Assembly (NCBI GenBank): GCA_965637545.1 | Contig: OZ281496.1 | Span: 7,316,001-7,380,000, forward strand | Direction: 5' to 3' | DNA from: Phallusia mammillata | Lineage: Eukaryota | Length of the DNA: 64,000 bases | Shown: positions 11,462 to 55,500 of the stretch, piece after piece | Numbering within the stretch: the first letter of the stretch is position 1 | Layout: each line of letters starts with the position of its first letter | Notes under the pieces: generated by a model | Seen by the model: the letters and a program-made list of their open reading frames with translations, nothing else | What the model was told of the DNA's origin: nothing | Databases searched by the model: none | Program-made: the position numbers and the translations under genes

Positions 11462-12316
11462 ATGACATCAAAGGATTTTGACTGTGATCAAAGGTTTCTA
11501 GAAGGTGGAAATGTAAAACGACATATGCTGAAACACAGCATTAAAAAACTATGTCAATGTGATGTTTGTAAAAAAACATTTGCCCAAAGTTGGATTTTGA
11601 AAAGACACATGTTGACTCACACCAAAGAGAAACTGCATCGATGTGATGTTTGTGAAAAAACATTCGCCCAAAGTTGGATTTTGAAACAACACATGTTGAC
11701 CCACACCAAAGAAAAATCTTATCAGTGTACCGTTTGTAGAAAGACATTCACTCTGCTTGGAGTATTAAAAAAACATATGGTGACACACACCAATGAAAAA
11801 CCTCACCGATGTGACGTTTGTGAAAAAGTGTTTGCTCGTAAAGGTGATTTGAAAGAGCACATGCTGACACACACCAATGAAAAGCCTCACCGATGTGGTG
11901 TTTGTGAAAAACGATTCGCTCGTGGTGGAGATTTGAAAAAGCACATGTTGGTTCACACAGATGAGAAACCTTTTCGGTGTGATCTTTGTGATACACGATT
12001 TACACAGAGTGGACATTTGAAAAGACACTTGTTGACTCACACTAAAGAGAAACCTTATCAATGTTTTGTTTGTAAGAAACGGTTTGCCCGTGGTAGTGAT
12101 TTAAAGACACACATGTTGATTCACACTGACGAGAAATCTCATCGATGTGATGTATGTGAGAAACGGTTTGCTCGTGGTATAGATTTGAAAAGGCATATGT
12201 TGACTCACACTAAAGAAAAACCTCATCAATGTGATGTTTGTAAGAAACGGTTTGCTCGTGGTAGTACTTTGAAATCACACGTATTGATTCACACTAAGGA
12301 GAACTCTCATCGATAA
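11462..12316 (+). CDS. Tandem C2H2 zinc-finger protein (ZF2), 9 complete fingers plus a degenerate N-terminal one
   Basis: 284-aa ORF with nine CxxC-x12-HxxxH units and TxEKP-type linkers; no KRAB/BTB domain in the ORF. Confidence 0.92.
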   Translation: MTSKDFDCDQRFLEGGNVKRHMLKHSIKKLCQCDVCKKTFAQSWILKRHMLTHTKEKLHRCDVCEKTFAQSWILKQHMLTHTKEKSYQCTVCRKTFTLLGVLKKHMVTHTNEKPHRCDVCEKVFARKGDLKEHMLTHTNEKPHRCGVCEKRFARGGDLKKHMLVHTDEKPFRCDLCDTRFTQSGHLKRHLLTHTKEKPYQCFVCKKRFARGSDLKTHMLIHTDEKSHRCDVCEKRFARGIDLKRHMLTHTKEKPHQCDVCKKRFARGSTLKSHVLIHTKENSHR

Positions 12317-13221: not shown

Positions 13222-13986
13222 GTTTACTGTGACATGATAGCTGCTGGTGGTGGATGTATTCTCGCGGCCGCATTCAACGATTTGTTACGTCGTCAAACAA
13301 CAACGAAAATGTTATGGGTGAAAAGATTATTTTCTCCACTAGAAAATTGTTCTTACGTGTTTTCTCAATTCCAGATGATCAAAAATGGATGAAAATGAAT
13401 ACATTCGGAATATTCGATACTTGCACAAGATCAGATTTCAAAAGTCAAACATATTATGAATATCAGGCAAATATTTTGTTGTATAGTGCATTGAATTTTT
13501 TAATCAACGGCTAGTTTTTGGAGAAAAAAAACATTATGTTATGTCATGCTCAAACTAACCACCACTGGAGGCCAGCAGAGAGCAGAGTAATTTGCAATAT
13601 TAAGCAGAGAATGGATTTATGCAAATATATTGAGGAAATTGGTAAGACAAACACTTGACAAAGTGTTTTTGCAAATAATTTTATCCAATGAATGATTGAA
13701 TAGTTTCTCTGGTTTATTACTAGTAATGCAAACTTAACTACCAAATGGAATGTTTGTGAAAAGTGACCGGTTGAACCTTTTCAATGTAGCAACATGTAAA
13801 GTTATTTAGAATTAAAACACCATATTTTTAGTTTTTTATCCCGACGTGAAATCGATGTTGGATCGACGTTATGCAAAATCAACAGAAATCACAAATTTAG
13901 TCACGGATTTCTATCCCTACGACTATGGTACTCACCCTTTCAAGCTGCAGGATAATAATTTGTTTGGAAACGATTACCGAATCGAG
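13222..13986 (+). pseudogene. Intelectin-like receptor fragment A (four internal exons)
   Basis: VYCDMIAAGGG, WMKMNTFGIFDTCTRSDFKSQTYYEYQ and SMLDRRYAKSTEITNL exons with deletions and stops; cut off by the repeat at 14050. Confidence 0.8.
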
Positions 13987-14049
13987 GTAAGTATAATAAA
14001 ACTTAGTGTTATTATATGGTGGAATGATCAACAACGTGTGTTAATCAGA

Positions 14050-15053
14050 CAGGGGGCAATTCGTATTCGAATGCATTCGAATTGTTGTAGGTCCCCGCCA
14101 ACCTAAGAATTTGCAAATTCGAATACACGATAATATTTTACGAATACAATTCGAATTGTTGCCAGCCTTGGGCAACGTAACAATTCGTGAAATCGAATGC
14201 ATGACTACATTTTTACGAATACAATTCGAATTGTCGTTTTCCTCCAGACTAGGAGAAGCCTAGAATATGTTGCCACATAGTTTTGCCAAATAGATTCGAA
14301 TACAATTCGATTTGGCAGTGAGTGTGACCTGACTCGACAAGTGTTTGATGTTACAAAACAATGGCACATACAACTTTGATTGTGACGTTACATAAATGCA
14401 ATTGTGTTATAAAACTTGCAACACTATGTTGTTCTCAGCACATGACAGGTGAAGCATGTTTGGGAAGCATCTCATGTAAATTTGGATAAATTTATATAAC
14501 GGAGATTTAAATCAGTCAAGCTATTGTGTCAAAACAAAGCTTGTTGGTTTACATTTTTACCAATTAATTTGCAATTCATAAACCCAAACGTTACTTTTTG
14601 TTCGAATACTCTTAAGTATTCCTGAATATGAATACATGCTTGGGTTTATTCGAATAGTATTCGAATTGCACGTTGTTGTTTTTTGTCAACTATTCATGAA
14701 TACAAATACTTCACACGTTTCATTCGAATATAATTCGAATTTATGTCACTTAACATTATGAAACAATTCGTGAATACGAATATTTGACTCGCATTATTCG
14801 AATACAATTCGAATTGCTGGACTTTACACAGTGCGTAAGTACTCGTGAATACGAAAACATGCTTTGGTTTATTCGAATAGTATTCGAATTAGATGTCATT
14901 GTATTTTGGTCAACTATTCACGAATACATATACTTGACTTGTGTTATTCGAATTGCTGTCATTCAAAAATTACCAAAGTATTCATGAATTCGAATACAAT
15001 CATGCAGGTATTCGAAAGTGTTCGAATACAGGACGCGTGTATTCGACCCCATG
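14050..15053. mobile_element. Probable non-autonomous DNA transposon rich in TTCGAA(T) motifs
   Basis: Very dense ATTCGAAT/CGAATAC motifs in both orientations; ends CAGGGGG / rc CATGGGG; no TSD. Confidence 0.45.
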
Positions 15054-17421
15054 TCTGGTCTTCATATATATATGCTGCCATATCATTATTTGGACTACTG
15101 GGTTTCAGATCAAAAGGATTTAATGTGTTTAAAATCATATAATCTGTCACACTACGAAACTTTTAGCAAACATACGATCGTTATTTATTTACACCGTGGT
15201 GGTTTGCGAGTTGATAAAATTCCCAAATTTACGAATGTTCAAACAAAAGGAGTATGATATAACTCACTTTCTGTTTGAGTTTGTGCGTTTTAGCTGGTAC
15301 AGTGGATGAAATGTAAGCAGTTAGTCAAAGTATTTGTCCGGTTTCATATCCAATTGCCTTTTAAGATGTTGGATGAATCCTTGAAAGGAAGTTGTTAAGA
15401 TACAAACATCTGCATTTGAACACAATTACTTGGGGACAATACCCACAAACAATTCAGAAGGTGGCGTTTAGTCTGGTATTGATGCGCAGGCAAGTCGAAG
15501 ATAATTTAATTTTAAATCAAATGTTTTTGACAGCACAGCCAGAATCTAAGCAAGTCCAATCTAACGCAAATCTATTCAAACGCCAGTTAGAATTTGTCAC
15601 AGTTAGAAGAAAACGTGTTTTTAATCGATTTGAATCAGATGCATGTTAGGACTGATTTGCAGCTAGGTTTGTGCAACAGACCATCACACTTCTTACAATG
15701 TTTCCCTAAGTGTTAGGTCAATTTATCGATATTGCTGGATTGTGTCTTTAGGGGCAGTAAAACGAACAATGAGTGACAATTAAATATTAGTATTTGTCCC
15801 ACATGACGATTTCTGCAGGAACGTATGTCTGGAATCTTTGTATTTACGTAAACATTTATTGCCCCAATCACTTCCTTATAGGTTCGTATTAAAAACAACT
15901 TCATGAAGACCACTTACTTAGTTGTACCGCATTTAACCATGATGCCTTAAAACACAAATGCTCCAATCATCGATTATTGCTAAAAATAATTTATGCATAT
16001 GTGACATTTCTGTGTCTTTTTGTGCATTTCTCATTTCTGTGTCATAACATGTGTTACCCTATTATTATTTTTGTGAAAGCTTTCAAATTAAAAGCAATTT
16101 CATCTTAATGTGTTCGAAAAATGTTATATCATCTCATACATTTTGCACTCGAAGCGATTTAGAAAACATCACATCGTTATTAATGTGTGTTGCAACAACC
16201 ATGGTTAACGAGGTTATAAAATCCACCAGTTTACGACCGATCAGAAAATAGGCGTTAAATATAAATTACTTCCAGTTTGAATTTGGCAAGGTTGGTGGCT
16301 CGAAGACGGATTGTCAGCAGTCTGGCAAAGTATTCGTCTGGTTTGGTATCCGATTTTACTTGCAAGATAACAATTTCAAGAAAATTTGGTAAAGATGGGC
16401 AAACCACAATTTTTGTAAGTTATATATCTGTGACATTGTGAAAGTTGTTAAGATGCAAAAAATTGTAACACTAGAAACAGGTGTTTTTGTGGTTTCGTGG
16501 GTACGTCTTTAATCAATTACCTGTTAATATTTTTTTTGATCAAATTATAAGTGTATTGAGCGGTGGAACATCAACCGAATCAAAAGTTCAAGAACGACCA
16601 AAGCTCTCTATGACAATACTGTATCCAAAAATATATAGGCGAACGGAACGTTTATGTGACTAACTTTGCACAAACGTTATAAGGACATTTTTGGTCTGGT
16701 CATCGCCCGATTTAGGTAAGTCTAAAATAAATTGAGGCACAGTGATGAAAATTTAGATGAATACGCAAAACAAAATTTTCTTGTCGTGATACGATTGTAC
16801 ACAAGAGTCTCGTCAGTGCACAATAGGACATTTTTATTGCGGTTACCTAGCAATGTTTTGCTCGTATTACAACATGATAGTTGTCATTTAAATCTAGCGT
16901 TTCAGTAACGCATAACAGCGTGGGTTGAAACTAATGTTGATCATTGGTGTTAACGAGGCTTCAAATGTCGCCATGTTTACGACCATTCAAACAATGAGCA
17001 CATGGTGTATAACACTTTCAGTTTTGGCTGATACATGTCAACGCTATTGCTTTGTTGAGAGATTTATTTGTTCCGGTTATCCACGCAATGTATTGCCCAT
17101 ATTGCAACATGATAGGTGTCACCTACAAATCTAGCGTTTCAAAACGTGGGTTAAAATCATAGTGTATTGTTGGTGTTAACGAGGTATTAAATGTCACCAA
17201 CTTTACGACCGTTCAACGATAAGCATATGATGTGTATCACTTTCTGTTCAGGCTGAGCAGAGTACTTATAATGCAAGAAACAAAATCAAATACGTTGTTG
17301 TATGCGTTCAACCAGTTGGTGCAACTGCATTAGTTTTCTAATGAACAAGTTGAAAATGATCATCTAAAACGTCAATCATGTGTAAGGTTTCTACGTTTTG
17401 CAGATTTTATAGAAATTAAAC

Positions 17422-20400
17422 ATGAATCATATTTATGTCAATAAAGACCCCGATGCTTACGAAACCATCGAGTTTAAAAAAGGACAAACTGTAAACAAGG
17501 TAGAAATTGTCTGTTAGAATGCTTTGTTAACCTTGAAGAATAGTGATTAAAATCAATGTTTTTGTCTGTAAGGAATTCAAAATCAGGAGATCCTCTCCAT
17601 TGTGTATGCAGGATCGCCAACTGACGCATATGATGAATCTATCGAAACAGTAAGAAGTTGTGGTGAGTTGTTCATTGGACGGGTCTCACAACACATTTGT
17701 GTCTTCTTGTATTTAATCACGAATGACTGGGGACTAAACTAACAATGGCATTTTTTTCTGTCTACCAAATATATATTAACTTGGATGGTAAATTGTTACC
17801 CATTCTTACGGCCGATTTGATTGTTTCGATTTCATTTATTTCAAATCTTGCTGTTATTCTGTCTTTTGCCCAAGAAACGTTTTATTTCCTTTTCAGGATA
17901 GCGATAATCGTACAACATTCTCTATTTGCACAGAAACTAAAAAATCGGCTGACAAACGTCGCAATATTGCTTCAAACAAACAACACACATCAATTTTGCT
18001 TGTAGTTTTGGTTTTCGCAGTTGGTATTCTGGCTGCTTTGGGGCTAGTTTTTGGAATACTCAATTTCAGAGAAAATCAGGTTCGTGATAAATTTGTGTGG
18101 CATACGCATTTTCAGTTGTTTGTATATTTGCATGTTATGTTGTTTCAGAACGGAAAAGAAGAAAGCTATCAAAGTAAGTCTTGTGCTATCAAATCCGCTG
18201 TTTGACGTTTTAAAAACCCAATTGCAAAAGTTTAAATAACTAAAAGTAATATCCATGCTCTTTGCAGTCACGTGCACTGCAACATTTTAATGCATGCACA
18301 GTACTGTAGTATATGTGTGATGAAACAATCTCCAAAAATGCAACTACACTTTGTTAAAAGCAGTTTGCTTGGAACCCACTTGAAGTAACAACAACAGCAA
18401 CATGAAAAAATAAGCCTTGTTTTTAGCAAAACCACCGCTTGGTACTTTCCCCAATCCTGCCCGTTCATGTGTTGAACTGAGAGATGCTGGGTTTAAAGAT
18501 GGAATTTACGTCATACAACCGTCACTCAAACCGTTTGAGGTATTATAAATTAATTTCTTTATTATTTCATTGAAAATATGCGATGTTATGACAACTTTTA
18601 CAATTGATTGGGTTGTGAGATTTCTGCGGGTTAAACAGTTTGGCTAAAAATGTTTTTTCTCTCGATTTTTATGTTTTATTTCAACATGTTTTTAAACACT
18701 CGTTAGAATTTGTAATTTATAATCTGTTCTAAAAATTTAGCTGTCGGCAATTTAAACGTTTTTTAAAATGTTTTACACATCAGTGCAGATGGTGACGTGA
18801 GATAGGTCATATTCGCAAGAGTAGCCATCCAACGGCATTCCAGTTTGTTAGCAGTAACATGCAAAAAAGCCACGTCTAACCTATTCTGTTTACTGCCACA
18901 ACTTTAGGCATAGACCACAGAGTGAACTGACTCACAACGGCCAAGCAACTTGTTGGGAACCTAAGTAAACTCGACCTTAAGTGAACAAGGGTCACAGTAT
19001 CAATTTAAAGCATCCAGCAAATTAATGACAAGCTGCGGGCAGTACACACTGTTTCGACCTACTAGGTCTTGTAGGTGCAGCTGGTGACGACAGATAGGTC
19101 GCATTGGCTACTAAAGTCAGCCAGTTTGTTGGGAGTTACAGTTCACTCTGTGGACAATGCCCAGCTCTGGCATGGACCAAAATAGGTGAGGCTTTATAGG
19201 TCGAAACAGTGTGCCCTGTCTGCTTTCAGAAGTTTCTTTGATTGATAAAAAACATTTATTTATTGGGCTGGGTGCATGTTGTACTACAGTTGTCTAAACG
19301 TGTTCGGCATTTGGGACAAATGTTTGGTGTTTAGGAATATTTTGCGATTTCATAAGAGTTTGTTTTATTTTTAGTTACGTTTATTAACTTCCTTATACGA
19401 CTTCTCTTCGTTTGATTCAAGGCGCATGCAAATTTAAAAACTTAAAAATTGGCTAATTTCGTACATATATTTCTAATTAATCCATGGGTTAAGTACAAAA
19501 ACAATAAATAAACACTTTAAACTATTTGTTTTGTATTACCTGTATTAATATTACCAAGTTTTACCAGCTAACCCACTTTTTTACTTAGGTTTATTGTGAC
19601 ATGATAGCTGCTGGTGGTGGATGGATTCTCGCGGCAACTATCAATGACAACAATTTCAACATGACAGAAGCTCATGGTGGATCGTGGTTTCTTACGTCGT
19701 CAAGCAATCAGGATGATGTTTTTGGTACTAGGTTGTTCTACTGTTTCAGAAAATTATTTTTGAATGCATTTTTAATTCTAGACTACCAAAGTTGGATGAA
19801 CACACATTCGTTCGGAACATTTGATACTTGCACAAGATCGGATTTTAAAAGCCAAGCTTATTATGAATACCAGGCAAATATTTTGCTGTATAATGCTTTA
19901 TATATATATATATATGTATATAAATGGTAGTTTTTAGGGAAAAGACATTATGTTACGTCACGTATTAAACCAAACACCACTGGAGGCCACCAGAGAGCAG
20001 AGTATTTTGCAATATCAAACTGTAAACCAATTTATGAAAACATATGGAGGAAATTTACATCAAATGTTTAACTCTCGATATCAACTAAAACCAGAAAATG
20101 GTAAGACACTTGATATATTGTTTTTGCAAATAATTTAATCCAATCAATTACTGAATACTTTCTCTGTTTTTTTACTGGTATTGCAAATTTAACTGCCAAT
20201 GGAATGTTTGTTATCTGCGATCGTTTTAATCTTTTTAACGTAGTTCCATGTAAAGGTATTTGGCATTAAACCACCGTTTTTTCAGTTTTTTATCCCGATG
20301 TGAAGTCGATGTTGGATCGACTTGAGGCAAAATCTACTGAAATCACAAATTTAGTCACTGATTTCTATCCTTACGTTTATGGCACTCAACCTTCCACACT

Positions 20401-22123
20401 GGAGGATAATAATTTGTTTGGAAACGATTACGGAATGCAGGTAAGTTTAATAAACTTTTATGTTTTTTTTTGAATAATCAACAAAGTGTTTTATTGTAGA
20501 TTTACTTTAACCCAGATCAAAATTGTTATCCATACGAATATGAAGCAAATTGTCCAAGTGATTATGTGGATTATGGTTTGGATTTCGGGTAAACCAGAGA
20601 ATTTTATTTTTCTCCTGTTCTTAAGTGTTAAGTTTATATTCACCTGTAAAGATGCGACCTAGGCAACATGATGCGATCAAGTCGGAAAATGCATCCATTC
20701 TTTGCTTTGTTTGCGGTGGGAAACTTCGATCAATGCGTTGACCATTTCTTCTGTCGAGTAAACAAATATTGAATTAGTACATTGTCGACGGTATTGTATT
20801 TTATTCATATTTGTTGTTTTAAGGTAAGATCGTATCGACCAAATACAGACTTAACAGTTTCATACAAAAGAAATCACACTCTCAACAATTTCTTCTTACA
20901 TTATGAAGCACAATGTAGATATGGGTCATCGTATGCCAGCTTGTGTGATGTTTGGTTTTATGTCAATAATGCGGAGGTACGTTGGGTTATTTAGCGCAGA
21001 ATTTTTGTGGCACTTTTAGGGTTAATGAATTAAGTCGAATTGAAATCTGAAACCTACCTTCGAAACTGCGTTATTTCTTTGTTTCAACAATTAGTGCGTC
21101 AGACACAAGTACTGCTATAAAAGCTGAAAAAATATTAACTTGACTACACTTTGCTGTTTACCGCATAGAAATGGAAATCATCCGAAATACCAGCAAAACA
21201 ATCATACAACTCTACATCCACATTATACTATTTTTTTGGATGGCAAATTGATGAAGCTGCATCTAACATACTTTTCGGTTACACGATGGTTTCAAGGTAA
21301 ACTGACGTAAACTGCAAGTATTGTAACATTACTCAGAAACATCAGAATATTTGATGTTCCGAAACCACTTTTACTTTGCAGAAGAAAGGGTGTTTTGATA
21401 CCTAACACAGAGATCAGCGCTCTTATGTACAAAGTTTTGGAAATTGTTTCAGAAACTGACATTTTATGTAAGTAAAATACTTCAGTTTCTGTGAACATCG
21501 AAGTTTTTCGTAGACACCAATTTTAAGACGAAACAACACAATTCCTGCCTTGATTGAATGTTCAAAAACTATTCTTTCAGTTTTTAATTTTATTATTTCA
21601 GGTCCGGATTGTTATTATAGTGATGACGTACTTTCAGTACCAGTTCAATTTTCCATCGGAAACGACTCAGTGGTTAACTCCATGCTGCCACCAAGTGTAA
21701 AACCTCTACCGACCGGTTTTGTTCAGTTTCGTGCTTATGGAAGAACAGGGAGCGTCTACGCAATGTGTCCTGCTGTCAAGTAAGAAATGGCTAAACTTCT
21801 GTAAAGTTGTTTCAAACATACTTATTTAAATACCTTTGATCTGTTTAGAGTAAACGATTGGCGAAGTGAATATGTTTGTATCGGAGGAATAAACAATCCA
21901 GACTCACCCCGCTTTGATGACTGCAACGATTTTACAAGTAATTTTTTTTTATTTTATCCCTTTTTTGAGAATAAATATTTGCTAGCTATTTTTTGAAATA
22001 AAATTGTAAATAACAATAGATTGGGACGGATTTCTAGAAACTACGTTAAACAAAACAACACCAGTCGATTATACTCATTCTCAGAGAGATTTGGATTCTA
22101 CAATTATGATATTTTATCGATAA
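17422..22123 (+). CDS. Type II transmembrane intelectin-like protein, copy B, apparently intact (~646 aa, 17 exons)
   Basis: Exons 17422-17499, 17587-17649, 17897-18079 (TM), 18149-18173, 18427-18539, 19589-19724, 19782-19873, 19938-20100, 20286-20440, 20500-20588, 20652-20757, 20824-20976, 21169-21296, 21382-21467, 21602-21779, 21849-21937, 22020-22123 join in one frame. Intelectin motifs SCVEL..DGIY, YCDM..GGGW, WMN..SFG, DFKS..YY, GFVQFR, CIGG, C.DF, final IFYR-stop. The first three exons are less certain. Confidence 0.8.
18900..19220. mobile_element. Penelope-like pLTR remnants in inverted orientation inside an intron of copy B
   Basis: CACACTGTTTCGACCT (19046) and AGGTCGAAACAGTGTG (19198) are reverse complements and carry the GGTC-GAAAC half of a hammerhead; 18905-18940 is rc-similar to 19125-19165. 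Confidence 0.4.
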
Positions 22124-22527
22124 ATATGATAATCTGACAAGCTGAAAAAATTTTTTATCGCCTAATTCATTTCAAGTATTACTGTTTTATAATCTCAGAA
22201 TTAATACATTTTAACTCGCATTCCCTTACTGATACTGACTTTCGGTATTGATTTGTCACATTGCGTGAAATATTATTGGATAATTGCTAATTTATTGATA
22301 AAATCGGTCCGAAAATGTTACTCAAAATATCAGCATTTCGAGTAATATAAATTACTTTCCGTTTTCTTGAACGTATGTGATTGTATATGAGTATGCTAAC
22401 CTTTTTGAACGCATTTTAACTAATTTTGTCAACTGAATATTATCTTCTGTTCTGTGGTAAATATTACTTCGCTCCAATATTTGAGTTTGTTTGTATTTGT
22501 TGCGACATATTATCTTCTAGCTATCTT

Positions 22528-25922: not shown

Positions 25923-28900
25923 AACCTGACAAAGGGCTTCCGGGAGAGAAGAGTAAAAATTCATCTAAGAAACAAGAAACGTCAACTTTGACTGTGGTTT
26001 TAATTTCCGCAGTGGGTATTCTGGCTGCTTTGGGACTATGTTTTGGAGTCCTCAATTTCTTAGACACACAGGTGAGTGATATTTGCTAAAAAATATACTC
26101 AAAATTACCAAATCTTGTGTTAATTCTTTTGTTTTAGAATCAAAATGAAGAAATCTATCCAAGTAAGCCCAAGACCAAAAAATTTCAAAAAAAGAATTTT
26201 GATTTGCTGTTTTGCATGTTACCTTAGAAGTAAATTCTGGTTGAAACTTTGTAAAACTCACTGATTATGTTTAATCTTTAGTTAAATATTTTAATTTGGC
26301 AAAGAAACAGGTGCATGAACAAACGACTCGCAAATATACAATTACTGTCTATTAAATAAAGTTCGTTTGACAACTCCTGAAAGCACAGCAACATTATGAA
26401 AGTCCTAATTATGAATATTATTAATATCTTTTACTCCATAGCAATACATACAATTGGTGAAACTTTTTTTAACGCAACTGATTCTGTTGCAACAAAACCA
26501 CCACTTGGTACTTTCCCCAATCCTTCCCGTTCATGTGTTGAACTAAGAGATGCTGGCTTCAAAGATGGAATCTATGTCCTACAACCGTCACTCAAATCGT
26601 TTGAGGTTTTAAAACGAAATTTGGAGAAACTTATTTTTGAAGAAACTTATTTTTTGTAAAATACAGTTAGCAAAACAAGTTTATGTCTAAGCAATATTTG
26701 CAAATTTTTAGAAAGACAATAACCGTTCTTTTCTTTTTTCCAGGTTTACTGCGACATGATAGCTGCTGGTGGTGGATGGATTCTCGCGGCCACTGTCAAC
26801 AACATTATGCCTGAATCTGATGATCAATCATGGTTTCTTACGACGAATGATAATCACCAGAACAACTTTGGTCAAAAGTTTAATTTGTCTACATCTTGAC
26901 TATTTGATTGTTAGCCTACATGTTGTTCAATTGCAGATCACCAAAACTGGATGAACACAAATAACATATGAAAATTGCACAAGATCAGATTTCAAAAATC
27001 AAGCTTATTTTGAATATCAGGCAAACTATGTATTTAATTAGGATCTTAAGTTTATTTTACACCGGGGTATTTTTTAGGGGAAAGACATTATGTTACGTCA
27101 TGTCCCAAATCAAACACCAGTTGAGGCCAGTAGAGAGCAAAGTTTTCTGCAATATCAAACTGAAAACAGTTTTATGGGATACTATGGAGGAAACTTGCAT
27201 AGAATTTTCAACTTTCATTACCCATTGAAACAAGCTAATGGTAAGATCAAAAAGTTATGGTTTAAAAATTCGGCAGATCAATACCGTATGAATATCTGTT
27301 GCATCATCAAGTATGTCGAAGCTTTAAGTGAAATTTGTACGCAGGACATAAGCTTAACAAACCCAGCAAGTTTCAAACCTAACTTTTTGATTTGATTTTT
27401 CATAAGCATACCAATGATTAATCTTTTTTGTGCTTAAAGTTTTGTATCCTGATGTAGGTTCAATGTTGGATCGACTTGCTGCAAAATCCAAAGAAATTAC
27501 AGACTTAATTTCTGATTTCTATTTTTACGAATATGGTCCTAGCTCATATTTGCTCCATGATGAAGGACTGTTTGGAACCGAACACGGAATGAGGGTAGGT
27601 CAGAATCGTTTTCTTATTCTTGTGATAAAAGGTGTTTGTGTAGATTTTATCCAGCGCCGGTCAAAGATGCAATATAGACAACTGTCCAAATGACTATGTT
27701 GAGTATGGGTTGTATGATGGGTAGGTCAAACCTACATCAGTTATCGTTTACACTTTAGTTTTACTTTTTACTTTAAAACTAAAGATGCGGAAATGGGAAC
27801 CTGATGCAATCAAGCAGAAAGATTCATCCCTTCATTGTTTTGTTTGCTGTGTCAAACACGGAAAACTGTTTGGACGATTTCCTTTTTAAAGTACGAAAAT
27901 GTTACGGTAAAAAGTTTCAAAAATAAAAATCAAACTTTATCATTTACTACTACAGCTGTACGGTCGACGACCAGACACCGATAAAACAGTTAAATATACC
28001 GGAGACCAACGTCACAACAATTTCTCTTTATATTATGAAGCGGGTTGCAGATATGGTTTGCCTTATGCCAGCTTGTGTGATGTTTGGTTTTATGTCATCA
28101 ATAAAAAGGTCCATTGCGTTTGTTGCAAAATATATTTTTAGTTTGGCTTGTTTTTAATTTACCTAAATTTTAATTTTTGTTTTGTAGGATTGGAAATCAT
28201 CAGACTCTCTTAATGTTAAGTTTACAAATTCTTCATCCAGTAAAACCTATACTTTTGGTTGGAAAATTATACAACCAGTATCGAACACACTGTTTGGTTA
28301 CACAATGGTTTCAAGGTGAATTGATATTTGTGTGAATAAGGCAAAATAAAAGCAATGAAGTTGTGTCAACAAAATTGTTTCATTAGGAAAAATGGAAGTT
28401 TAATTAACCAAACAGAGATAAACGCAGTCACCAACAAAATGCTGGAAATCATTTCAGAGTTTGACAATTTGTGTACGTTAATCGGTTATTACTCTTGGTA
28501 CATGCAGTTCTTTCAAACTTTAATCGGTTGTTGTTTCAGATCCGGACTGCACTTATGATGATGACGTACTTTCAGTACCAGTTCAATTTTCCATAGGAAA
28601 CAATTCAGTGGTTAACTCGATGCTGCCACCAAGTGTAAAACCTTTACCGACCGGTTTTGTTCAGTTTCGTGCTTATGGAAGAACTGGGAGCGTCTACGCA
28701 ATGTGTCCTGCCATTAAGTAAGTAAGACTGGTGTATATATAATGATTTGTACTAAGATAGAGCAGGAGTACAGAAAACCTTGTTCGCTCTGTAATGTCTT
28801 TGTAACAGCTATTGTTTATTGTTTTCGTAGGGTAAACCATTGGCGAAGCGAATACGTGTGTATTGGAGGAATGAAAAACCCAGACTTTCGATATTATGAT

Positions 28901-29093
28901 GACTGCAGTGATTTTACAAGTAATTATACAAGTTATTTTTTTTGGACATATTTACGTACTAGTTTGTAAAACATTTTTGTATTAAACAGACTGGGACGGA
29001 TTGTCGAAAACCTTGTTGCACGAAACAACTCCAGTTGATTATGCTCATTCTCAGAGAGATTTGGATTCAACAATTATGATATTTTATCGCTAA
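25923..29093 (+). pseudogene. Intelectin-like receptor copy C (TM exon to stop), frameshifted
   Basis: All exons from TM (TLTVVLISAVGILAALGLCFGVLNF) to IMIFYR-stop present; 8-nt deletion near 26962 gives TGA at 26969. Confidence 0.8.
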
Positions 29094-31233: not shown

Positions 31234-31396
31234 NNNNNNNNNNNNNNNNNNNNNNNNNNNNNNNNNNNNNNNNNNNNNNNNNNNNNNNNNNNNNNNNNNN
31301 NNNNNNNNNNNNNNNNNNNNNNNNNNNNNNNNNNNNNNNNNNNNNNNNNNNNNNNNNNNNNNNNNNNNNNNNNNNNNNNNNNNNNNNNNNNNNNNN
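31234..31396. other. Assembly gap
   Basis: Run of N. Confidence 0.99.
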
Positions 31397-35189: not shown

Positions 35190-38100
35190 TTAATTGTTTA
35201 GGGGGGGCTGGGGGCCTGGACTTCGAGATGTATTAGTTCGAGATTGATGGTATTGCATCAGTAGATGCGAACGGTATTTTTTCCTAAAGGAGGAGCGTGT
35301 GAGCGACTTTGTGACGTGTGGTATTTCTTCCCATACTTTTGGACCTCGATAGCAAATTGACCTTGAGCCAACGGCGGTGTTTGCGCGGGGATAAAAATAA
35401 TTCTGACTGTCGGCCCTTCTGGTGTTGTGAGCATGGACTGACGAAATAGGTGTAAACAGGGTGTTGTATGTGGAAGGTAGTGCACCAGAATGAAACGCGT
35501 GAACCAGTTTGGCTAATTCTAGTTTATAGATGTCTCTAATTTTCAGAAGGCGCATATGGTAGTATATGGGGGTGGCGCGACATCGGTAGGTACTCCGAGT
35601 AATAGCTCGCAAGATTTTATTGTGTTTAATGTTGAGGTTATGCAGTGATGCGGTGCAGCCACTGCCCCAAGCGGCGACGGCATATTGCAGATGGGAGTAT
35701 GCAAATGAGTAATAAATAATTCGGAGAAACTTTTCTCCAAGGTAATCGCGAAGCTTATACACTATACCGCAAGCTTGAGCCAATTTTCTTTCGACATACG
35801 TTATATGGTGTTTCCAATTTAACTGATCGTCGATGTATACTCCCAGGTATTTTGTTTTCGTCGATCGCTGTACTTGTTGCGATCCCATGAATATGGAAAA
35901 CTTGTCGGAAAAAGAACGCTTGCTAGGACGAAACAGTAGGTACGTTGTTTTACTGGTGTTTAGTGATAATTTGTTGTGTCGCATCCAATTGTCCACGTGT
36001 GTGAGTTCCTTGTTTACGTTTTCCTGCAGATCAGTTAAAGACTCTGATGACATGCAAAGGCACGTGTCATCCGCAAATAATTTGGTTGTGAATTGGGATG
36101 CAGTGGGGAGGTCATTAATATAAAGGGAAAACAGAAGAGGAGCCAAGGAGGAACCTTGAGGACAACCGCACGTAACGTATTGAAATTGTGATGTTACATG
36201 TGATATGCGTGTGCATTGCCTGCGGTTACGTAAGTAGCTACATAGTAATTGTAAGGGGCCTCCCCGTATTCCATACAGGTGCTCCAACTTCCACAACAAA
36301 ACCTTGTGATCGACGGTGTCAAACGCTTTTGATAAGTCCAGGAAAATAGCGCATGTATATTTCTTCTGGTCAAGGGCGGCTAACACTCTTTCGTGGATGT
36401 CGTAAATTGCCAGGGAGGTGGACCGATTGCATCGAAAACCATACTGGTGAGTTGTAAACATTCCATTTTTTTCAACGTAGTCATACAAACGTTGATACAT
36501 AATTTTTTCAAATATCTTAGCAAATGGGGATAGCAGTGAAACTGGCCTGTAGTTAGTGCATTCAACTTGTGAACCTGATTTATAAATTGGTATCACTTCC
36601 GCAACTTTAAGTTCATCGGGGTATTCCCCATTTTGTATACACCAGTTAAAAATCTCTGAGAGCATAGGTGAAATAATGCTTTTAACCATTTTAATGTATT
36701 TAATAGGAATTTCATAACTTGGCACAGATTTTTGACTGTCAAGTGTGGATATATACATTTCCACCTCATCTGGGGTAGTGTCAAAGAAGAAGAAGGATGA
36801 TGGCTGTGCGGTGTAGGCACTGGTCGGTGGTGGCATTACTGGTTGTGGAATAGACGAAGCCATATTTGCTCCGATGTTAGCAAAGAACTGATTAAAGTTG
36901 CTGGCAATTGTAACTGGGTCTGTGGTGCAATGTGCTACACCATCTAGTTTAAGTTCTGCTGGGGCATTGTGTGGAGTTTGTTTTCGTGACAACAATCTAT
37001 TGACTATTTTCCACATTCCCCCTATATCATTTCTATGATCGGTTAATTGCTTTTCAATGTATTTATGTTTAGCTTCTCTCAGAATGTGGTTTAGCTTGTT
37101 CCGATACTGTTTATATTGGTTATGTTTACTTGTACTTGCAAACCCCGACCTACATAAAGCATGATACATTTTGTTTTTCGTTTTGATTGACTTATAAATA
37201 CCCTTGCTTATCCAAGGTTTTTTGGCCAATTTCCTTCTTCTTCTAGTCATTGTGGTAAGTGGTGCATGTTGCTGGAGTATCTTGTGAAAATAATGGTTGA
37301 GTAAAGTGAATTTGTGCAATATAGATTCAGTAGATAGAGGTATGTTGCTAACAGCACCTTTTATGTCAGAAATAAATTTTTCGCGATGAAACATGGTCTC
37401 ATTTCTACTTAGCATTTTTTCTGTTTTATCATAGCAAGTTGAATGCAATAACACAAAAGTTGGCAGATGGTCAGAAATGTCTGCAGATAGTATTCCTGAT
37501 TTGCAGGAAATATTTACATTGTTTGTGTAAAAATGGTCAATAAGAGTTTGGCTGTGGTTAGTTAAACGAGTTGGTTGACATATTAAGGGTGATAGACCAT
37601 AAATTTGAATAGAATCTAAAAAGTTTTGAATACTTTTAATTTCCTTGTGTTGCATGAGATCTATGTTGAAATCACCACATATATAAACAGTCTGGTTGGT
37701 ATCACTCAGTTTATGCAATACTGATGATAGTGCATCCTGAAACTTTTCAAATGAGTGTTTAGGATGCCTGTATATTACTCCCAATATTACATTTTTTTGT
37801 TTCAATTTAAGTTGTAACCAAAGACTTTCAGTATCTGGGGCAGTAAGTGTAATATCAGATCTTATGCTATATGCAAAGTGTGATTTTATATATACTCCAA
37901 CTCCTCCAGCACTATGGGGAGTATCAACATGATAGAAGTTATATCCCATTATATCAGTAGCAGTGGTTATGCCCTTGAGAGTTATTCTAGTCTCAGTTAC
38001 CATAATAATGTCAGGGGATCTAAACATATCAGATAGCCATTGTTCTAAAGCCAGTTTGTTTTTCCTTAGACTTCGAATGTTAATGTGCATTATATAAATA

Positions 38101-38330
38101 TCTTTGTTACACAGTTTTTTTAGGGCATAGTTTAAGGATGCACTGTCATAGTAATCGGAATGGGTATGATCACTGTTTGCTAGTAAACAGGGTTTACCAG
38201 GTGTTTCTATGGGTACAATGGCATTTCTTAGCTCTAAGTTGCTGATATTGCAAAAGGGTAACATGGTCAATATGCATCTGGTACAAAAGTATGGGGTGTT
38301 TTTGTTGACACTACATTTGTTACATTTCAT
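35190..38330 (-). CDS. LINE ORF2 (APE endonuclease + reverse transcriptase), CR1/L2 group, Crack-like
   Basis: 1046 aa without stops; MHINIRSL, ETRI, GVIYRHP, CGDFNID, TLIDH, SDHLP; RT NYRPVSLL, FLDLSKAFDTV, GCPQGS, LFADDT. Confidence 0.95.
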   Translation of the reverse strand: MKCNKCSVNKNTPYFCTRCILTMLPFCNISNLELRNAIVPIETPGKPCLLANSDHTHSDYYDSASLNYALKKLCNKDIYIMHINIRSLRKNKLALEQWLSDMFRSPDIIMVTETRITLKGITTATDIMGYNFYHVDTPHSAGGVGVYIKSHFAYSIRSDITLTAPDTESLWLQLKLKQKNVILGVIYRHPKHSFEKFQDALSSVLHKLSDTNQTVYICGDFNIDLMQHKEIKSIQNFLDSIQIYGLSPLICQPTRLTNHSQTLIDHFYTNNVNISCKSGILSADISDHLPTFVLLHSTCYDKTEKMLSRNETMFHREKFISDIKGAVSNIPLSTESILHKFTLLNHYFHKILQQHAPLTTMTRRRRKLAKKPWISKGIYKSIKTKNKMYHALCRSGFASTSKHNQYKQYRNKLNHILREAKHKYIEKQLTDHRNDIGGMWKIVNRLLSRKQTPHNAPAELKLDGVAHCTTDPVTIASNFNQFFANIGANMASSIPQPVMPPPTSAYTAQPSSFFFFDTTPDEVEMYISTLDSQKSVPSYEIPIKYIKMVKSIISPMLSEIFNWCIQNGEYPDELKVAEVIPIYKSGSQVECTNYRPVSLLSPFAKIFEKIMYQRLYDYVEKNGMFTTHQYGFRCNRSTSLAIYDIHERVLAALDQKKYTCAIFLDLSKAFDTVDHKVLLWKLEHLYGIRGGPLQLLCSYLRNRRQCTRISHVTSQFQYVTCGCPQGSSLAPLLFSLYINDLPTASQFTTKLFADDTCLCMSSESLTDLQENVNKELTHVDNWMRHNKLSLNTSKTTYLLFRPSKRSFSDKFSIFMGSQQVQRSTKTKYLGVYIDDQLNWKHHITYVERKLAQACGIVYKLRDYLGEKFLRIIYYSFAYSHLQYAVAAWGSGCTASLHNLNIKHNKILRAITRSTYRCRATPIYYHMRLLKIRDIYKLELAKLVHAFHSGALPSTYNTLFTPISSVHAHNTRRADSQNYFYPRANTAVGSRSICYRGPKVWEEIPHVTKSLTRSSFRKKYRSHLLMQYHQSRTNTSRSPGPQPPLNN

Positions 38331-38361
38331 GTGGAAGAAGGGTGTTTAACTTTATTTGGGT

Positions 38362-39072
38362 TTAGGTATTAATCTTATGCCTTACTAAATCTTTGTCGCT
38401 CCGGATGGCAATGATGTTACTGTTGTCATCCTTTTTTAGAAATGTTGCTCCATTTCTGGTCCAGATATGATGGTACTGATGCTCCTTCTTGAACCGGAGA
38501 CAGCTATTAAATCTCTCACGGTTCTTCTTGGTCAGGCTCTCATTAATAAAAATTTGATTGACCGGGGATACACCTCTGTTAGATTGTTTAAGTTTATACC
38601 GGTTTGAATATATTGCATCTCTCACTTTACGGCTCATAAATTTTGCAATAATTGCCGAGCGTGGGTGGTCTTTTGATGGTCTCCGAAGTCGGTGCGAGAT
38701 GCTGATGTCAGGTTTACTAATAGTGATCCCCAACTTTTTCACAGCCGAGATCACCAGAGTGTCTGTGCACTCATTTTCAGAATAGGGAAGGCCCTTGAAT
38801 TCCAAGCAGGGTCTGCGACCATACTGCTCGAGGTCATTTAAGTCCTCAGAAGTGGAGATGGTCACTGCTTGTAACTCCTTCACAGCCTTCTTTAGTTCCC
38901 TATTTTCTGTTCTTAAAGTTTTTAATTCAATCTCATTGTTTGCTACCTTGGATTTTACCTCCTCATATTGTTCCTGTAAAAATGTCTGGCTCTTCCGGAT
39001 CTCTTTTAGTTCATTTATCAGCTCTTTTAAGGTTGAGTCGGTAGAGGTTTTGCTCTCCCGAACTTCTTCCCT
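38362..39072 (-). CDS. LINE ORF1 (coiled coil + RRM/CTD type), 5' end lost in gap
   Basis: Coiled coil then LEQYGRR..LEFKGLP, DISISHRL, IFINESLT, IWTRNG; directly upstream of ORF2 on the same strand. Confidence 0.88.
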   Translation of the reverse strand, partial: REEVRESKTSTDSTLKELINELKEIRKSQTFLQEQYEEVKSKVANNEIELKTLRTENRELKKAVKELQAVTISTSEDLNDLEQYGRRPCLEFKGLPYSENECTDTLVISAVKKLGITISKPDISISHRLRRPSKDHPRSAIIAKFMSRKVRDAIYSNRYKLKQSNRGVSPVNQIFINESLTKKNRERFNSCLRFKKEHQYHHIWTRNGATFLKKDDNSNIIAIRSDKDLVRHKINT

Positions 39073-39073
39073 C

Positions 39074-39273
39074 NNNNNNNNNNNNNNNNNNNNNNNNNNN
39101 NNNNNNNNNNNNNNNNNNNNNNNNNNNNNNNNNNNNNNNNNNNNNNNNNNNNNNNNNNNNNNNNNNNNNNNNNNNNNNNNNNNNNNNNNNNNNNNNNNNN
39201 NNNNNNNNNNNNNNNNNNNNNNNNNNNNNNNNNNNNNNNNNNNNNNNNNNNNNNNNNNNNNNNNNNNNNNNNN
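39074..39273. other. Assembly gap
   Basis: Run of N. Confidence 0.99.
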
Positions 39274-41459: not shown

Positions 41460-41984
41460 ATGGAATTTCAGGATTTTAACTTCGAGCAAAGTGATGTTTT
41501 TGATCAGAGGTTTATTGAACGTGGAAATGTAAGACGACATAAGCTAAAACACAGTATTCGGAAACTTTATCGATGTGATGTTTGTGAAAAAACTTTTGTC
41601 CGAAGTGGAACTTTGAAAATACATATGTTGAATCACACTGGAGTTAAACCACATCGATGTGTTGTTTGTGAAAAAGGGTTTGCTCGTGGTGGAGATTTGA
41701 AAACACACATGATGACCCACACTAAAGAGAAACCAACTCGGTGTGATGTTTGTGGAAAGAGTTTCATTTTTAGTTCAAATTTGAAAAGACACATATTGAC
41801 CCACACGAAAGTTAAACTTCATCGATGTGATGTTTGTAATAAAACATTTGCCAGGTCTGACAATTTGAAAGTACACATTATGACTCACACTAAAAAGAAG
41901 GTCCATCAATGTGAGGTTTGTGAAAAGCCATTCAATGGCTTTTCAAGTTTGAAAATACACTTGTTGACTCACAACAAGAAGTAA
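41460..41984 (+). CDS. C2H2 zinc-finger protein (ZF3), 5 complete fingers plus a degenerate N-terminal one
   Basis: 174-aa ORF; N-terminus DQRFIERGNVRRHKLKHSIRK matches ZF2 DQRFLEGGNVKRHMLKHSIKK. Confidence 0.9.
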   Translation: MEFQDFNFEQSDVFDQRFIERGNVRRHKLKHSIRKLYRCDVCEKTFVRSGTLKIHMLNHTGVKPHRCVVCEKGFARGGDLKTHMMTHTKEKPTRCDVCGKSFIFSSNLKRHILTHTKVKLHRCDVCNKTFARSDNLKVHIMTHTKKKVHQCEVCEKPFNGFSSLKIHLLTHNKK

Positions 41985-48163: not shown

Positions 48164-49468
48164 ACTATTATATTGTGCTTTCAAGTTTGAAAAACACCTC
48201 CTGCCATCAATGTTCTGCTCCTATTTTGATCTCACCGCTAACATTCATTCTCAGTACAAACGTGTGAGTGCGTGTATATGTGTAAATTTTGGTGTAAGAA
48301 GGGGTAGCTGACACGGTGACCACAGAGTCTTTCGCTACCCCGCACATTTCTCTTTTTCAATTTTTTTCGTATTTTTCTTTTGTTCGGATATTTCGTGCGA
48401 AATAAACTTACTTACTTACTTACTTGCATCGATAGTGAAACAATTTTTCTAACCACGCAAAAACTGATCTTGATTATATAAAACAATGAAAAACTGTACG
48501 TTCAAACTTGAAAAAAAAGCTGAGTAAAAAATGAAAAAAAGCTGAGTAGCAAGTTACAAAATTATTCCGGAAATTGATATCTGACCTTGTGATATTTCCA
48601 ACATTGTTGAGTTGAGTTTATTTCGCTCGGTAAAACAATTGCACTGAATTATTCACCTTGCCGGAGATAGCTGCGCAACGTTGAGACGTTAAAAAGCGCG
48701 ACAAAGTGGAGGACACAGTTGGTGGAGAGATGAGAAACGCGCTGCAGCTACACCGTAAGTTATACCTACGCCCCCAGGGCAAACAGCGGAAAAAAGGCTC
48801 CAGCAAACACACAAAACATCGCATATCTCCAGTTCTAGTACAGGTAGAAAGGTGAAATTTCACACCTGTACTAAGTCGAACATGCAGAATTTAAAAATGC
48901 AAAAAAATTTTTTTGCCACAAAATTAAAAAAATTTTGGGCCGAAATATCCCGATTTTGGTAACTCAAACTAAAACGGGAAAAATAAAATATTGCTCATTT
49001 TTTTTGGAAAAGCTTTACGTTCCTGAAAATCTAAGTGATATGCGCCAAACTTCGGGGCGGCTGGTTAAAAAAATGCAATTTATTTGAAAAATTTTAGGAC
49101 GTAAAAAGGTGGCAGTTTAGGTTTGGCGCTCAAATTTTGGGGTCAAATCTCAACAGATTTGAATGAAACTTGCAGGAAATGCAAAAAATGGTCATTACTT
49201 TGCACAGAAAAAATATCTACTTAAAAATACCTAATGGTAAAAATTGATAACCGATTAAATGTTATTACTGCCAAATTACATTTTGGAATAAGTACGATCT
49301 TCAGTTTATCTTTAAAAAACGCAAGAAATTGACACTTAAATGCAATGAATCACACACATATGCAATTATGAGGTATTTAGGCTACTATATTGTAAAAATC
49401 AAAAGAAAACATTGATTCTGAGCGAAATATTATTATATGTATATTTGTATTAGCTGTTTCTTTTTTAG

Positions 49469-49723
49469 GGTGAATGATTGGCGAAGCGAGTTTGTTTGTA
49501 TTGAAGGCATAAAGAGCCCCGAATCTCTCTACTTGGATGACTGCAATGACTTTACTAGTAAATTATCTGTGTGTGTTTTTACATTTTTTTGGTTCAAAAA
49601 TGTTTTGGCACCAAACGCAGATTGGGACGGTTTGCGTACACCTCGTTAAGTGGAACGACTCCAGTTGATTATGCTCATTCTAGGAGAGATTTGGATTCAA
49701 CAATTATGATATTTTATCGATAA
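49469..49723 (+). pseudogene. Intelectin-like fragment F (last two exons)
   Basis: VNDWRSEFVCIEG..DDCNDFT exon and WDG...DYAHSRRDLDSTIMIFYR exon with a 1-nt frameshift. Confidence 0.82.
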
Positions 49724-52549: not shown

Positions 52550-55500
52550 ATGGATGATGGTGATGTAGATATTGGTGCTAATGCATATGAAACTATTGAA
52601 GAAAGACATTTTCGTCATGCTCCACCTAATATAAGACACTCAAGTAAAGACATTTTATGAAAGTTTATGGTTAGTTTACGAACTGCAACATTATCAATGC
52701 ATATAAAATAAGTTTTATTGTAGTTATCGAAATGTACAAAACAGAAAAAAGATAAACAAATTAAATTGGCTTTAAGTATATTGAGAAAAAGTTAAATCTG
52801 CATTATACCTTTATTTTGATAATCACTTCTTCCACTTAAATGTAAAATATTTTTCGTATCTAATCATATATCATGCGTTTATGAAAAAGAATTTCCGAAG
52901 ACATTCTCAAATGAGTATGAAAATCCCTTACCAAAGTTTCATAGAGAAAATGGAAATACATTGAGTCCAACAGATGCGTCTGTGCAAAAAAATGGTAAGG
53001 GCGTTTTAGAAAAAGTTTATCAAAGGTGAAATTAGTTAAACTTTTCTGTTTCAACTTAGAAAATGTCAAAGTTCAATCCAAAAAAAGTGAAAAAAAGTGT
53101 GTGCAAAAACAGAGCTTCTCGAAACTGAACATAATCTTGGTGTGTGTGATTGTAATTCTGGCTGCTTCGGCGCTAGGTTTCGGAATACTTTACTTCACGA
53201 AAGACCAGGTGTGTAATATTTTTTTTGTAAAAGCTATGCAATGTTTCTATGCAACAAGATTCTTTTGCTTTAGGACGAAACGGAAGAACTTTATGAAAGT
53301 AAGTCAAATATTCGAAAACATATTTGGGTCAACTAAATAGATTTAAAAGTTATATCAATGCTAAATGTCAGAAACATGATCGTACAATTTTTGAAAAACT
53401 GTCCAAGAAATCAATATTTTAGTTTTGTTTGAAAACTCTCTATAGGTAATTATTTATTACTTTCTCATACGTTTACAAATACAAATGATATTTGTATAGC
53501 ACCACTGACAAATGGACAAGCAGCTTTAAACACAGCTGAATATGTGACAACAACCCCCAAACTTGGTAATGATGTATAGTTGTTGTTCCAGTGTTGCTAA
53601 ATTATTTCTTTAGCACTGCAGACAACTGGACAAATCAACTTTAACACAACTGGATCAGTAGCAACAACACCACCGCTTGGTACTTTCCGCAACCCTGCAA
53701 GTTCATGTGTTGAACTGAGAGATGCTGGTTTTAAAGATGGAATCTACGTCATACAACCGTCACTCATATCGTTTGAGGTATTTACCAAATCATTTTACTC
53801 ACATTATCGATGTATTTGGAAGGAAAATAATAATCAATGCATAAATGTATTTAGACAGTGGAAATATTGAAATATATAAAAATTTAAGAAATACAAATGC
53901 ATTTAGGTTTACTGTGACATGATAGCAGCTGGTGGTGGATGGATGGATTCTCGTGGCCACAATAAACAACAATAATTTCAATATGACAGAAGCCTATGGT
54001 GGATCGTGGTTTCTTACGACGTCAAACAATCACCAAAATTACTTGAGTAAATTTGGCAATGTAACACAAATTGCTACAGCTCATTTTTACTATTCAATTC
54101 CAGATTATCAAAATTGAATGAACACAAATTCATTCGGAACATTTGACAATTGCACAAAATCAGATTTCAAAAGTCAAGCTTATTACGAATATCAGGTAAA
54201 TATTGTGTGTTGTAAAAAGTGGAACATTTTTTGCGACTACAATTTTTCAGGGAAAAGACATTATGTTACGTCATGTTCCAAACCAAACTCCACTGGGTGT
54301 CAGCAAAGAGCAAGGTTTTCTGCAATATCAAACAGAGAACGGTTTTTTGAAAAATCATGGAGGAAATTTGCTTAATTTGTTTACTACTCATTATCCATTA
54401 AAATCTACAAGTGGTAATGTACTTAACTTTGCGATATTTCGTTTTTGACAGTGGTAACACTATATTTTTTGTTCTTGAAAATTATGTAAATTTGGTGTGT
54501 GCTAACAATCATTTTTGTAAGGGTGATTTATTCGATGCCAGTTCTGGATGATTTTAATTGATTAATTTTATATCCAAGCTTTCTTTCCTGATGTAAAATC
54601 GATGTTGGATCGACTTGCTGCTAAATCCAAAGAAATTACAAAGCATATTTCTGATTTCTATTTTTATGATTATGATACTGGTTCAATCTCGCTACGCGAT
54701 AACAACGTTTATTCCTCTGGTGGAATGCTGGTAATATATCCACATGGCGGTATTTTTGAGGAACCATAAATAAAAAGTGTTTGCACAGGCAAACATTGGA
54801 ACAAGCCAATCTTGCTATCCCAGCTCACATAAAGCAAATTGTCAAGACGGCTATATACATTATGGTTTGGATTATAAGTAAGTTAATTTTTTTAGTTTTA
54901 CTGGTTTTACGTAAACTTCTACTGTTTTGCTTAACAATATAGATGTGATCTTGGAAACATGATGCAATCGAGTCGAAAAACGCATCCTTTTTTTGCCTTG
55001 TTTGCGGTGGGAAATTTTGATAATTGCTTTTCCAGCATGAGCTTTTGGGTAAAGGAATAACGCATTAACAATTTATCTGAAGTCATTCCATTGTTTTATG
55101 ATTGATATGTATAGGTTCGTTCTTTCCGACCAAATACAGAAACCATAGTTTTGTACGAAAGAAATCACACTCTCAACAATTTCCTTTTACATTATGAAGC
55201 ACAATGTAGAAATGGGACTTTGTATGCCAGCTTGTGTGATGTTTGGTTTCATGTCATAAACACTGAGGTAAGCTGGATTCGAAGCCTGTTTGTGGTCAGT
55301 GTTTCTTCTTCTTTGCAAATGCACAACTCAATCCATTTTCTAACCAATTCGGTAATATATGAAAATTTTCATCAATTTTACCCAAATACGCTCGAGTTAT
55401 ACAAGAACGAAACTAAGTGAACTCTTTAGCTATTTGATCGACATCTAATATTTATCACTAAAACCAAAACTGTAATTATAACTGAGAAATAAATTCAAAT

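Follow-up and report, generated by a model that had tools for sequence, protein, structure and literature searches.

A conserved domain, predicted to be a beta-sandwich, nested in the intelectin-like fold of a family of putative ascidian membrane receptors

The known intelectins are secreted proteins of ~300 residues, among them human intelectin-1 (PDB 4WMQ/4WMY) and Xenopus XEEL (4WMO). Vertebrate type II lectin receptors of the C-type, such as Dectin-1 and the asialoglycoprotein receptor, carry an N-terminal cytoplasmic tail with tyrosine motifs, followed by a membrane segment, a stalk and a C-terminal lectin domain. Here we describe a gene of the ascidian Phallusia mammillata at 17422–22123 on the + strand of a 64,000-nucleotide window (assembly GCA_965637545.1, contig OZ281496.1, positions 7,316,001–7,380,000; all coordinates below are those of the window), the predicted product of which has features of both. 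Like the intelectins, it keeps the CDM..GGGW start, the ..CIGG.. core and the C-terminal ..FYR, and both halves of the fold align with them, the N half over chain positions 14–185 and the C half over 177–306. Unlike them, it is 635 residues long with a tail and a membrane segment, has a domain of ~240 residues nested in a loop, and has most of the ligand-calcium residues replaced. Its layout, known from sequence alone, is analogous to that of the C-type lectin receptors, but its lectin fold is intelectin/fibrinogen-related and unrelated to the C-type. We think it likely that the nested element is a constitutive, self-folding beta-sandwich of ~240 residues with terminal helices, set in a loop of the intelectin-like (X-type lectin) domain of a tandemly expanded family of putative ascidian membrane receptors.

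The gene model was built from an RNA joint, reading frames and Phallusia protein guides, and has 17 exons and an intact open reading frame (ORF) of 635 residues. From the N to the C terminus it encodes a tail of ~67 residues, a basic stretch, a hydrophobic segment, a short stalk and an intelectin-like domain that is split by the insert. RNA contigs from run X1 and three further runs (X7, X8 and X13) of the same organism label were mapped on 17400–22200; they carry GT..AG joints and are thus RNA-derived.

The insert consists of six exons, here called e1 to e6, which lie exactly where a sequence-only reading of the window had placed them, and splice-site assembly gives every one an AG acceptor and a GT donor. 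Together they make 717 nucleotides, or 239 codons, free of stops and with phase-1 introns on either side. The first, e1 (20286–20440, 155 nucleotides), would supply the nested domain with its N-terminal helix and first strands; it is kept in the paralogs and is covered by an RNA contig at 20298–20438. It is followed by e2 (20500–20588, 89 nucleotides), a variable loop with two cysteines and with RNA joints on both sides, and by e3 (20652–20757, 106 nucleotides), which carries an SRKxHPF motif and is covered over its whole length by a single RNA contig with 0 mismatches. The e4 exon (20824–20976, 153 nucleotides) has the motif NFxLxYxAxCxYG....S.CDV and an RNA joint to e3, and e5 (21169–21296, 128 nucleotides), with a GYTMxSR motif, is placed by splice sites and conservation, with no RNA contig on the exon. 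The last, e6 (21382–21467, 86 nucleotides), ends in phase 1 and is predicted to supply the C-terminal helix. The motifs singled out in the sequence-only reading are all present, as HPFFALFAV, CRYG..YASLCDVWFYV and ILFGYTMVSR.

Transcription and splicing of the first four of these exons are directly observed. RNA joints in X1 at 20438/20498 (+2), 20587/20651 (+1) and 20757/20824 are the predicted e1/e2, e2/e3 and e3/e4 introns, with 0 mismatches, and a contig of 207 nucleotides spans e2, e3 and e4, likewise without a mismatch. At the other end of the insert, a contig of a paralog (X13) ends in ..LEIISETGNF(C) right before the exon starting at 21602, which is the expected phase-1 junction of e6 with the next exon. 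X1 also has RNA-type contigs at a depth of 76 at 19171–19331, within the intron 18539–19589, which also holds a repeated element at ~18800–19220; this pile-up is probably a transcribed repeat outside the gene structure.

On the 5' side of the insert, the intelectin-like domain is encoded by four exons. The fibrinogen-related/intelectin domain begins in exon 5 (18427–18539; ..ARSCVELRDAGFKDGIYV..), where tblastn with the Phallusia homologs P0001 and P0018 gives 77–87% identity and a paralog RNA contig lies at 18428–18490. Exon 6 (19589–19724; VYCDM..GGGW) is intelectin core with a weak Pfam Fibrinogen_C match, E 0.0091 and under the gathering score; the Ciona homolog P0004 matches the same Pfam family with 35.2 bits (cut-off 22) over residues 101–147. 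Exon 7 (19782–19873) continues the core, and exon 8 (19938–20100) is the last before the insert, ends in phase 1 and is overlain by an RNA contig at 19936–20050 with 0 mismatches. The intron between these two, 19874–19937, is of the GC-AG kind, its GC donor (CAG|GCAAAT) following the 92-nucleotide lectin exon; the same donor is found in two of the paralogs described below, B (27019–27077) and D (62667–62721), and the matching intron of the Ciona gene for P0012 has a GT donor. The intelectin fold resumes in exon 15 (21602–21779; PDCYY..VPVQF..GFVQFRA..), which aligns to the intelectin-1 chain from position 194 and has RNA contigs in X1, X7 and X13. It is followed by exon 16 (21849–21937; ..YVCIGG..) and by the C-terminal exon 17 with the stop (22020–22123; ..STIMIFYR*), the latter with RNA contigs at 22068–22128.

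The position of the insert within the fold was obtained from P0004, which is 36% identical to the window protein; the window exons align to the family throughout. In a comparison with PDB sequences, P0004 matched XEEL, human intelectin-1 and lamprey serum lectin in two pieces, with E between 5e-46 and 5e-43. Residues 96–252 correspond to positions 28–185 of the intelectin-1 chain and residues 491–605 to positions 194–306, and the ~238 residues between them match nothing, in agreement with the sequence-only reading of a module of ~240 residues inside the intelectin fold. A finer alignment, which was reproduced, sets the insert in the loop equivalent to ..VKYGEGKC.. of human intelectin-1.

An exhaustive profile search with a 51-residue alignment of e4 gave nine matches among 1.84 billion representative proteins; a word search with this alignment gave no candidate, as its length window would lead one to expect. 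Five of the nine are genuine members of the family: P0001 and P0002, which are the closest to the window gene, and P0003, P0004 and P0006. The other four, P0005, P0007, P0008 and P0009, were rejected as tetratricopeptide (TPR), cadherin-like or junk repeats that share a short motif. When the insert regions of P0004 and of P0001 served as queries in word searches, ten Ciona intestinalis proteins of 432–699 residues, each named "uncharacterized protein LOC...", and two Phallusia mammillata UniRef entries, P0001 and P0018, were recovered. Every homolog recovered has the insert. Identity to the window protein over the whole length is 58% for P0001 and ~36% for the Ciona proteins, and within the SRKxHPF motif S, R, K, H, P and F are invariant between Ciona and Phallusia. 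At the Ciona locus of P0012, which was mapped exactly, exons of 153, 128 and 86 nucleotides with phases 0, 0, 2 and then 1 correspond to e4–e6 of the window gene, and here too the insert lies between phase-1 introns. Given these matching lengths and phases, the architecture is older than the split between Ciona and Phallusia. The Ciona locus also has tandem copies of the family (at 1259–2607, 14680–15571 and 16528–18406 of that locus), for which the NCBI models are short (176–183 residues) and apparently partial gene calls. No description of an insert-bearing family was found in a literature search on intelectins (transmembrane, invertebrate, Ciona, ascidian) and on the names of the Ciona loci; where intelectins are mentioned in placozoan and ascidian papers, they are treated as soluble or cytosolic lectins, and no inserted domain is reported.

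Further copies within the window were found by tblastn of the gene model against the window and by exon-by-exon modelling. The insert exons recur in three paralogs, at 27440–28472 (B), 54579–55832 (C) and 63130–63798 (D), and every paralog in the window carries the insert. Paralog B (26744–29093) has the full 12-exon structure of lectin plus insert, with insert exons of 155, 77, 106, 153, 128 and 86 nucleotides and again phase 1 on both sides. Paralog C (53907–56563) has in-frame stops (DYQN*MNT and AHS*RDLD) and lacks part of the exon that matches 21602–21779, and is probably a pseudogene. Paralog D runs from 62382 to the end of the window, which it leaves after e4, with tail and membrane exons apparently at ~60906–62135. 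Between copies, the ratio of nonsynonymous to synonymous substitution rates (dN/dS) is 0.35–0.44 for the insert and 0.25–0.32 for the lectin exons, and the insert is therefore under purifying selection. The most variable of the insert exons is e2, with lengths of 77–89 nucleotides between copies and a ratio of nonsynonymous to synonymous differences (pN/pS) of 0.44–0.84 versus 0.30–0.60 for e4; in this small sample of copies there is no sign of positive selection on e2.

The sequence-only reading could assign the insert to no known domain, and database searches came to the same result. Pfam gave no match for any insert exon or for the insert of five whole homologs, and a PDB sequence-profile search with a 28-row alignment of the insert (A3) gave 0 matches at E ≤ 10. 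All 28 rows of A3 run against PHROGs gave nothing under E 0.07, tblastn of the insert against 50,697 GenBank phage records gave no match, and none of 22 pattern matches from a motif scan of IMG/VR was confirmed. The idea that the insert is a duplicate of one half of the lectin was also rejected, with an hhalign probability of at most 1.1% against either the N or the C half.

An AlphaFold model of the insert alone (P0018:295–540, alignment A3) has a mean predicted local distance difference test score (pLDDT) of 84.2 and a predicted template-modelling score of 0.87, and shows a short N-terminal helix pair, ~11 long beta strands and a C-terminal helix of 20 residues. The insert also has a pLDDT of 80–96 within an AlphaFold model of a Ciona ectodomain, and the lowest confidence in the domain is in the e2 loop (pLDDT ~68–73). 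On these models, the insert is a beta-sandwich that is predicted with confidence to fold independently.

The best Foldseek match of the insert model in the PDB, to a GH65 enzyme (7fe3_A), is weak, with E 3.8e-4 and a template-modelling (TM) score of 0.34. The same enzyme tops the VIA-align list with a Z of 8.7 over 180 residues and a root-mean-square deviation (rmsd) of 4.5, in a method in which a best Z of 7–8 is common for unmatched models. The 50 rows of that list have Z of 8.7–6.2, with 136–206 residues aligned at rmsd 3.3–5.7, and most of the named ones are glycoside hydrolases, glycan phosphorylases, polysaccharide lyases, aldose-1-epimerase-like or mutarotase-like proteins, and the YidC periplasmic domain. 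The matched domains share what we take to be the supersandwich (galactose-mutarotase-like) fold, and this is the likely fold class of the modelled insert, with no claim of homology. Supersandwich domains are found N-terminally in GH65, GH94, GH15 and GH63 enzymes, C-terminally in polysaccharide lyases, and in aldose-1-epimerase-like proteins and the periplasmic part of YidC. Unlike a full supersandwich, the insert has fewer strands (~11) plus two terminal helices, and no sequence similarity to these domains was found. Closer in shape are predicted viral structures in BFVD: A0A8S0HZG8, with a TM score of 0.70 and rmsd 3.4 (E 8.7e-7), and A0A6J5NIC1 and A0A6J5PYY2, from uncultured Caudovirales phages, with TM scores of 0.61 and 0.53, the E values of the three running from 8.7e-7 to 3.1e-6. 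The predicted structures of these unnamed phage proteins, which are without known function, superpose on nearly the whole insert model at 9–12% identity. A fold common to the modelled insert and the phage proteins does not show shared descent.

The N-terminal part of the protein bears on where the lectin would be displayed. Exon 1 (17422–17490) begins with the start codon and encodes the initial portion of the cytoplasmic tail, which resembles that of P0018 and P0001; the 3' end of this exon is set by the model only. Exon 2 (17587–17662) encodes the second part of the tail, with an RNA joint at its 3' end and an acceptor at 17587 picked by reading frame. Exon 3 (17934–18079), with an RNA joint at its 5' end, encodes the basic stretch and then the single membrane segment, and the joint 17661/17933 (GT..AG) links it to the tail exon. 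The stalk exon 4 (18149–18173), of 25 nucleotides, is placed by frame and splice sites only. The highest mean Kyte–Doolittle hydropathy over 19 residues, 3.17, is at residue 69, within the one hydrophobic segment at ~68–91 that follows the basic stretch. The 635-residue model has no signal peptide, an N-terminal hydrophobic signal being absent. From this combination we infer a type II membrane topology, and the homologs in Ciona and Phallusia have the same layout of tail and membrane segment. The tail (17422–17662) contains the tyrosine motifs AYETIE in exon 1 and VYAG and AYDESI in exon 2, and the Phallusia and Ciona homologs have comparable Y-x-x-I/V motifs in their tails. By their sequence, these could be sorting signals or signals like the immunoreceptor tyrosine-based activation or inhibition motifs (ITAM/ITIM).

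In human intelectin-1 the ligand calcium is reportedly held by N243, E244, N260, E262, H263 and E274, a numbering consistent with the alignments used here. At these columns P0004 has H, T, D, Q, Y and T in a HMMER alignment, and the window gene has R, T, R, E, Y and R in a hand alignment to the same columns; the alignment has small gaps, and individual residues may be misplaced by one column. In intelectin-1 the aromatic pair W288/Y297 has been called crucial (PMC12800186). The equivalent of W288 is kept, as ..NWDG.. in the window protein and ..DWNG.. in Ciona, and the equivalent of Y297 lies 17 residues from the C terminus as in the human protein, with either F or Y at this place among the Ciona paralogs. 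With most of the calcium residues replaced and the aromatic pair kept, the old sugar site has been modified without being clearly lost.

These observations suggest how the protein might work. At the cell surface it would be a recognition receptor, in which the intelectin fold would serve mainly as a scaffold because several of the ligand-calcium residues are replaced. A ligand-binding surface, probably for glycans, would be provided or modified by the nested sandwich and the variable two-cysteine loop that e2 adds to it, and the tyrosine motifs of the tail would couple binding to uptake or signalling. The reverse division of labour, in which the nested domain is a non-binding spacer or oligomerisation module and the intelectin site does the recognition, has some points in its favour: the counterparts of the aromatic box W288/Y297 are kept, intelectins are oligomeric lectins (as cited for human intelectin-1), and the terminal helices of the nested domain could pack or pair. 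We nevertheless regard it as unlikely, since the calcium/ligand site is largely changed in both P0004 and the window gene and since it is the nested domain that contains e2, where the protein varies most.

How the domain came to lie within the intelectin fold is less clear. The sequence-only reading took the symmetric phases as a signature of exon shuffling. The 1-1 phases around the insert are indeed found in the window gene, paralog B and Ciona P0012, and symmetric, conserved phases together with a domain that is predicted to fold alone speak for exon shuffling. Such phases are necessary yet insufficient, and exon shuffling thus stays a fair hypothesis that is unproven. Against it, the second protein context that the sequence-only reading proposed to look for was not found: the e4 profile described above detects this family only, although remote homologs may escape a profile of 51 residues. 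It also goes against the shuffling account that a module derived from a prokaryote or virus would have had to gain five introns later. A more far-reaching scenario, which we consider rather improbable, is that the nested domain was captured from a surface or glycan-handling protein of phage or bacterial type into a phase-1 intron of an intelectin gene in an ancestor that Ciona and Phallusia share, acquired introns afterwards, and now forms, with its variable two-cysteine loop, the diversified surface by which a large and so far undescribed family of membrane-anchored ascidian receptors recognises molecular patterns.

The symmetric phases had also led the sequence-only reading to propose two isoforms, that is, an optional cassette of six exons that is skipped en bloc in some transcripts to give canonical as well as insert-bearing ectodomains. 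Joining 20100 directly to 21602 is indeed in frame, reads ..KPENGPDCYYSDDVLSVPV.. as predicted and restores an intelectin-like loop, and at some Ciona loci several NCBI isoforms (X2) are annotated. En-bloc skipping of six exons is unusual, however, and the proposal is not supported here. The skip joint 20100→21602 was not found in X1, X7, X8 or X13, which give few, low-depth contigs on the gene. The insert is in all paralogs, in P0001 and P0018 and in the ten Ciona proteins, and it has been kept with its exon structure across the Ciona/Phallusia split and under purifying selection. All the evidence found points to constitutive inclusion of the insert, and an optional cassette appears very unlikely. 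That the insert is not coding at all, its frames being open by chance or left over from a decayed pseudogene in a long intron, has only the lack of a database domain name to recommend it and can be dismissed in view of the exact spliced RNA junctions, the conservation in paralogs and Ciona, dN/dS <0.5 and the confidently predicted fold.

Several observations weigh against a constitutive, self-folding domain in a functional receptor family. The outer junctions of the insert, 20100/20286 and 21467/21602, are unseen in RNA for this copy of the gene, and given the low read depth a minor skipped isoform is possible. The assignment of the fold rests on a middling Z (8.7) and on predicted phage structures at 10–12% identity. 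In the AlphaFold model of the Ciona ectodomain the intelectin part is unfolded (pLDDT ~25) because the alignment is too shallow, and the packing of the two domains is not given. The aromatic pair W288/Y297 is apparently kept, and judged by these residues the old sugar site may still work. Finally, the second lectin exon of paralog B (~26935–27018) is 8 nucleotides shorter than that of the window gene, which shifts the frame, and B is probably a pseudogene or an assembly error. With this deletion and the stops in C, damage is apparent in two of the window's three further full-length copies, and the local array is probably in part decaying.

The remainder of the window holds two fragments of the family and several unrelated features. 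The fragment at 13222–13989 consists of lectin exons and insert exon e1, with stops, and that at 49455–49720 of the last two lectin exons only. On the – strand, 35190–38883 has an open frame of 1046 residues and an upstream ORF of 173 residues, and 1343–2797 has an ORF of 484 residues; by eye, both look like genes (reverse transcriptase/endonuclease) of retrotransposons without long terminal repeats (non-LTR). Single-exon ORFs with tandem C2H2 zinc fingers and HTxEKP linkers lie on the + strand at 11462–12316 and 41460–41984, between the intelectin-like genes. Runs of N occupy 31234–31396 and 39074–39273.

Work on intelectins has dealt with small, secreted proteins that recognise the sugars of microbes; in the present family one loop of the fold houses another complete domain, and the protein is apparently tethered to the membrane, with tyrosines in its tail. 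Among the invertebrates most closely related to vertebrates the family has many members, whose annotation does not go beyond "uncharacterized protein". Should the nested domain bind a ligand, it would be a clear natural case of the insertion of one domain within another creating a new class of receptor, and would provide a functional lead for the unnamed phage proteins of the same shape.

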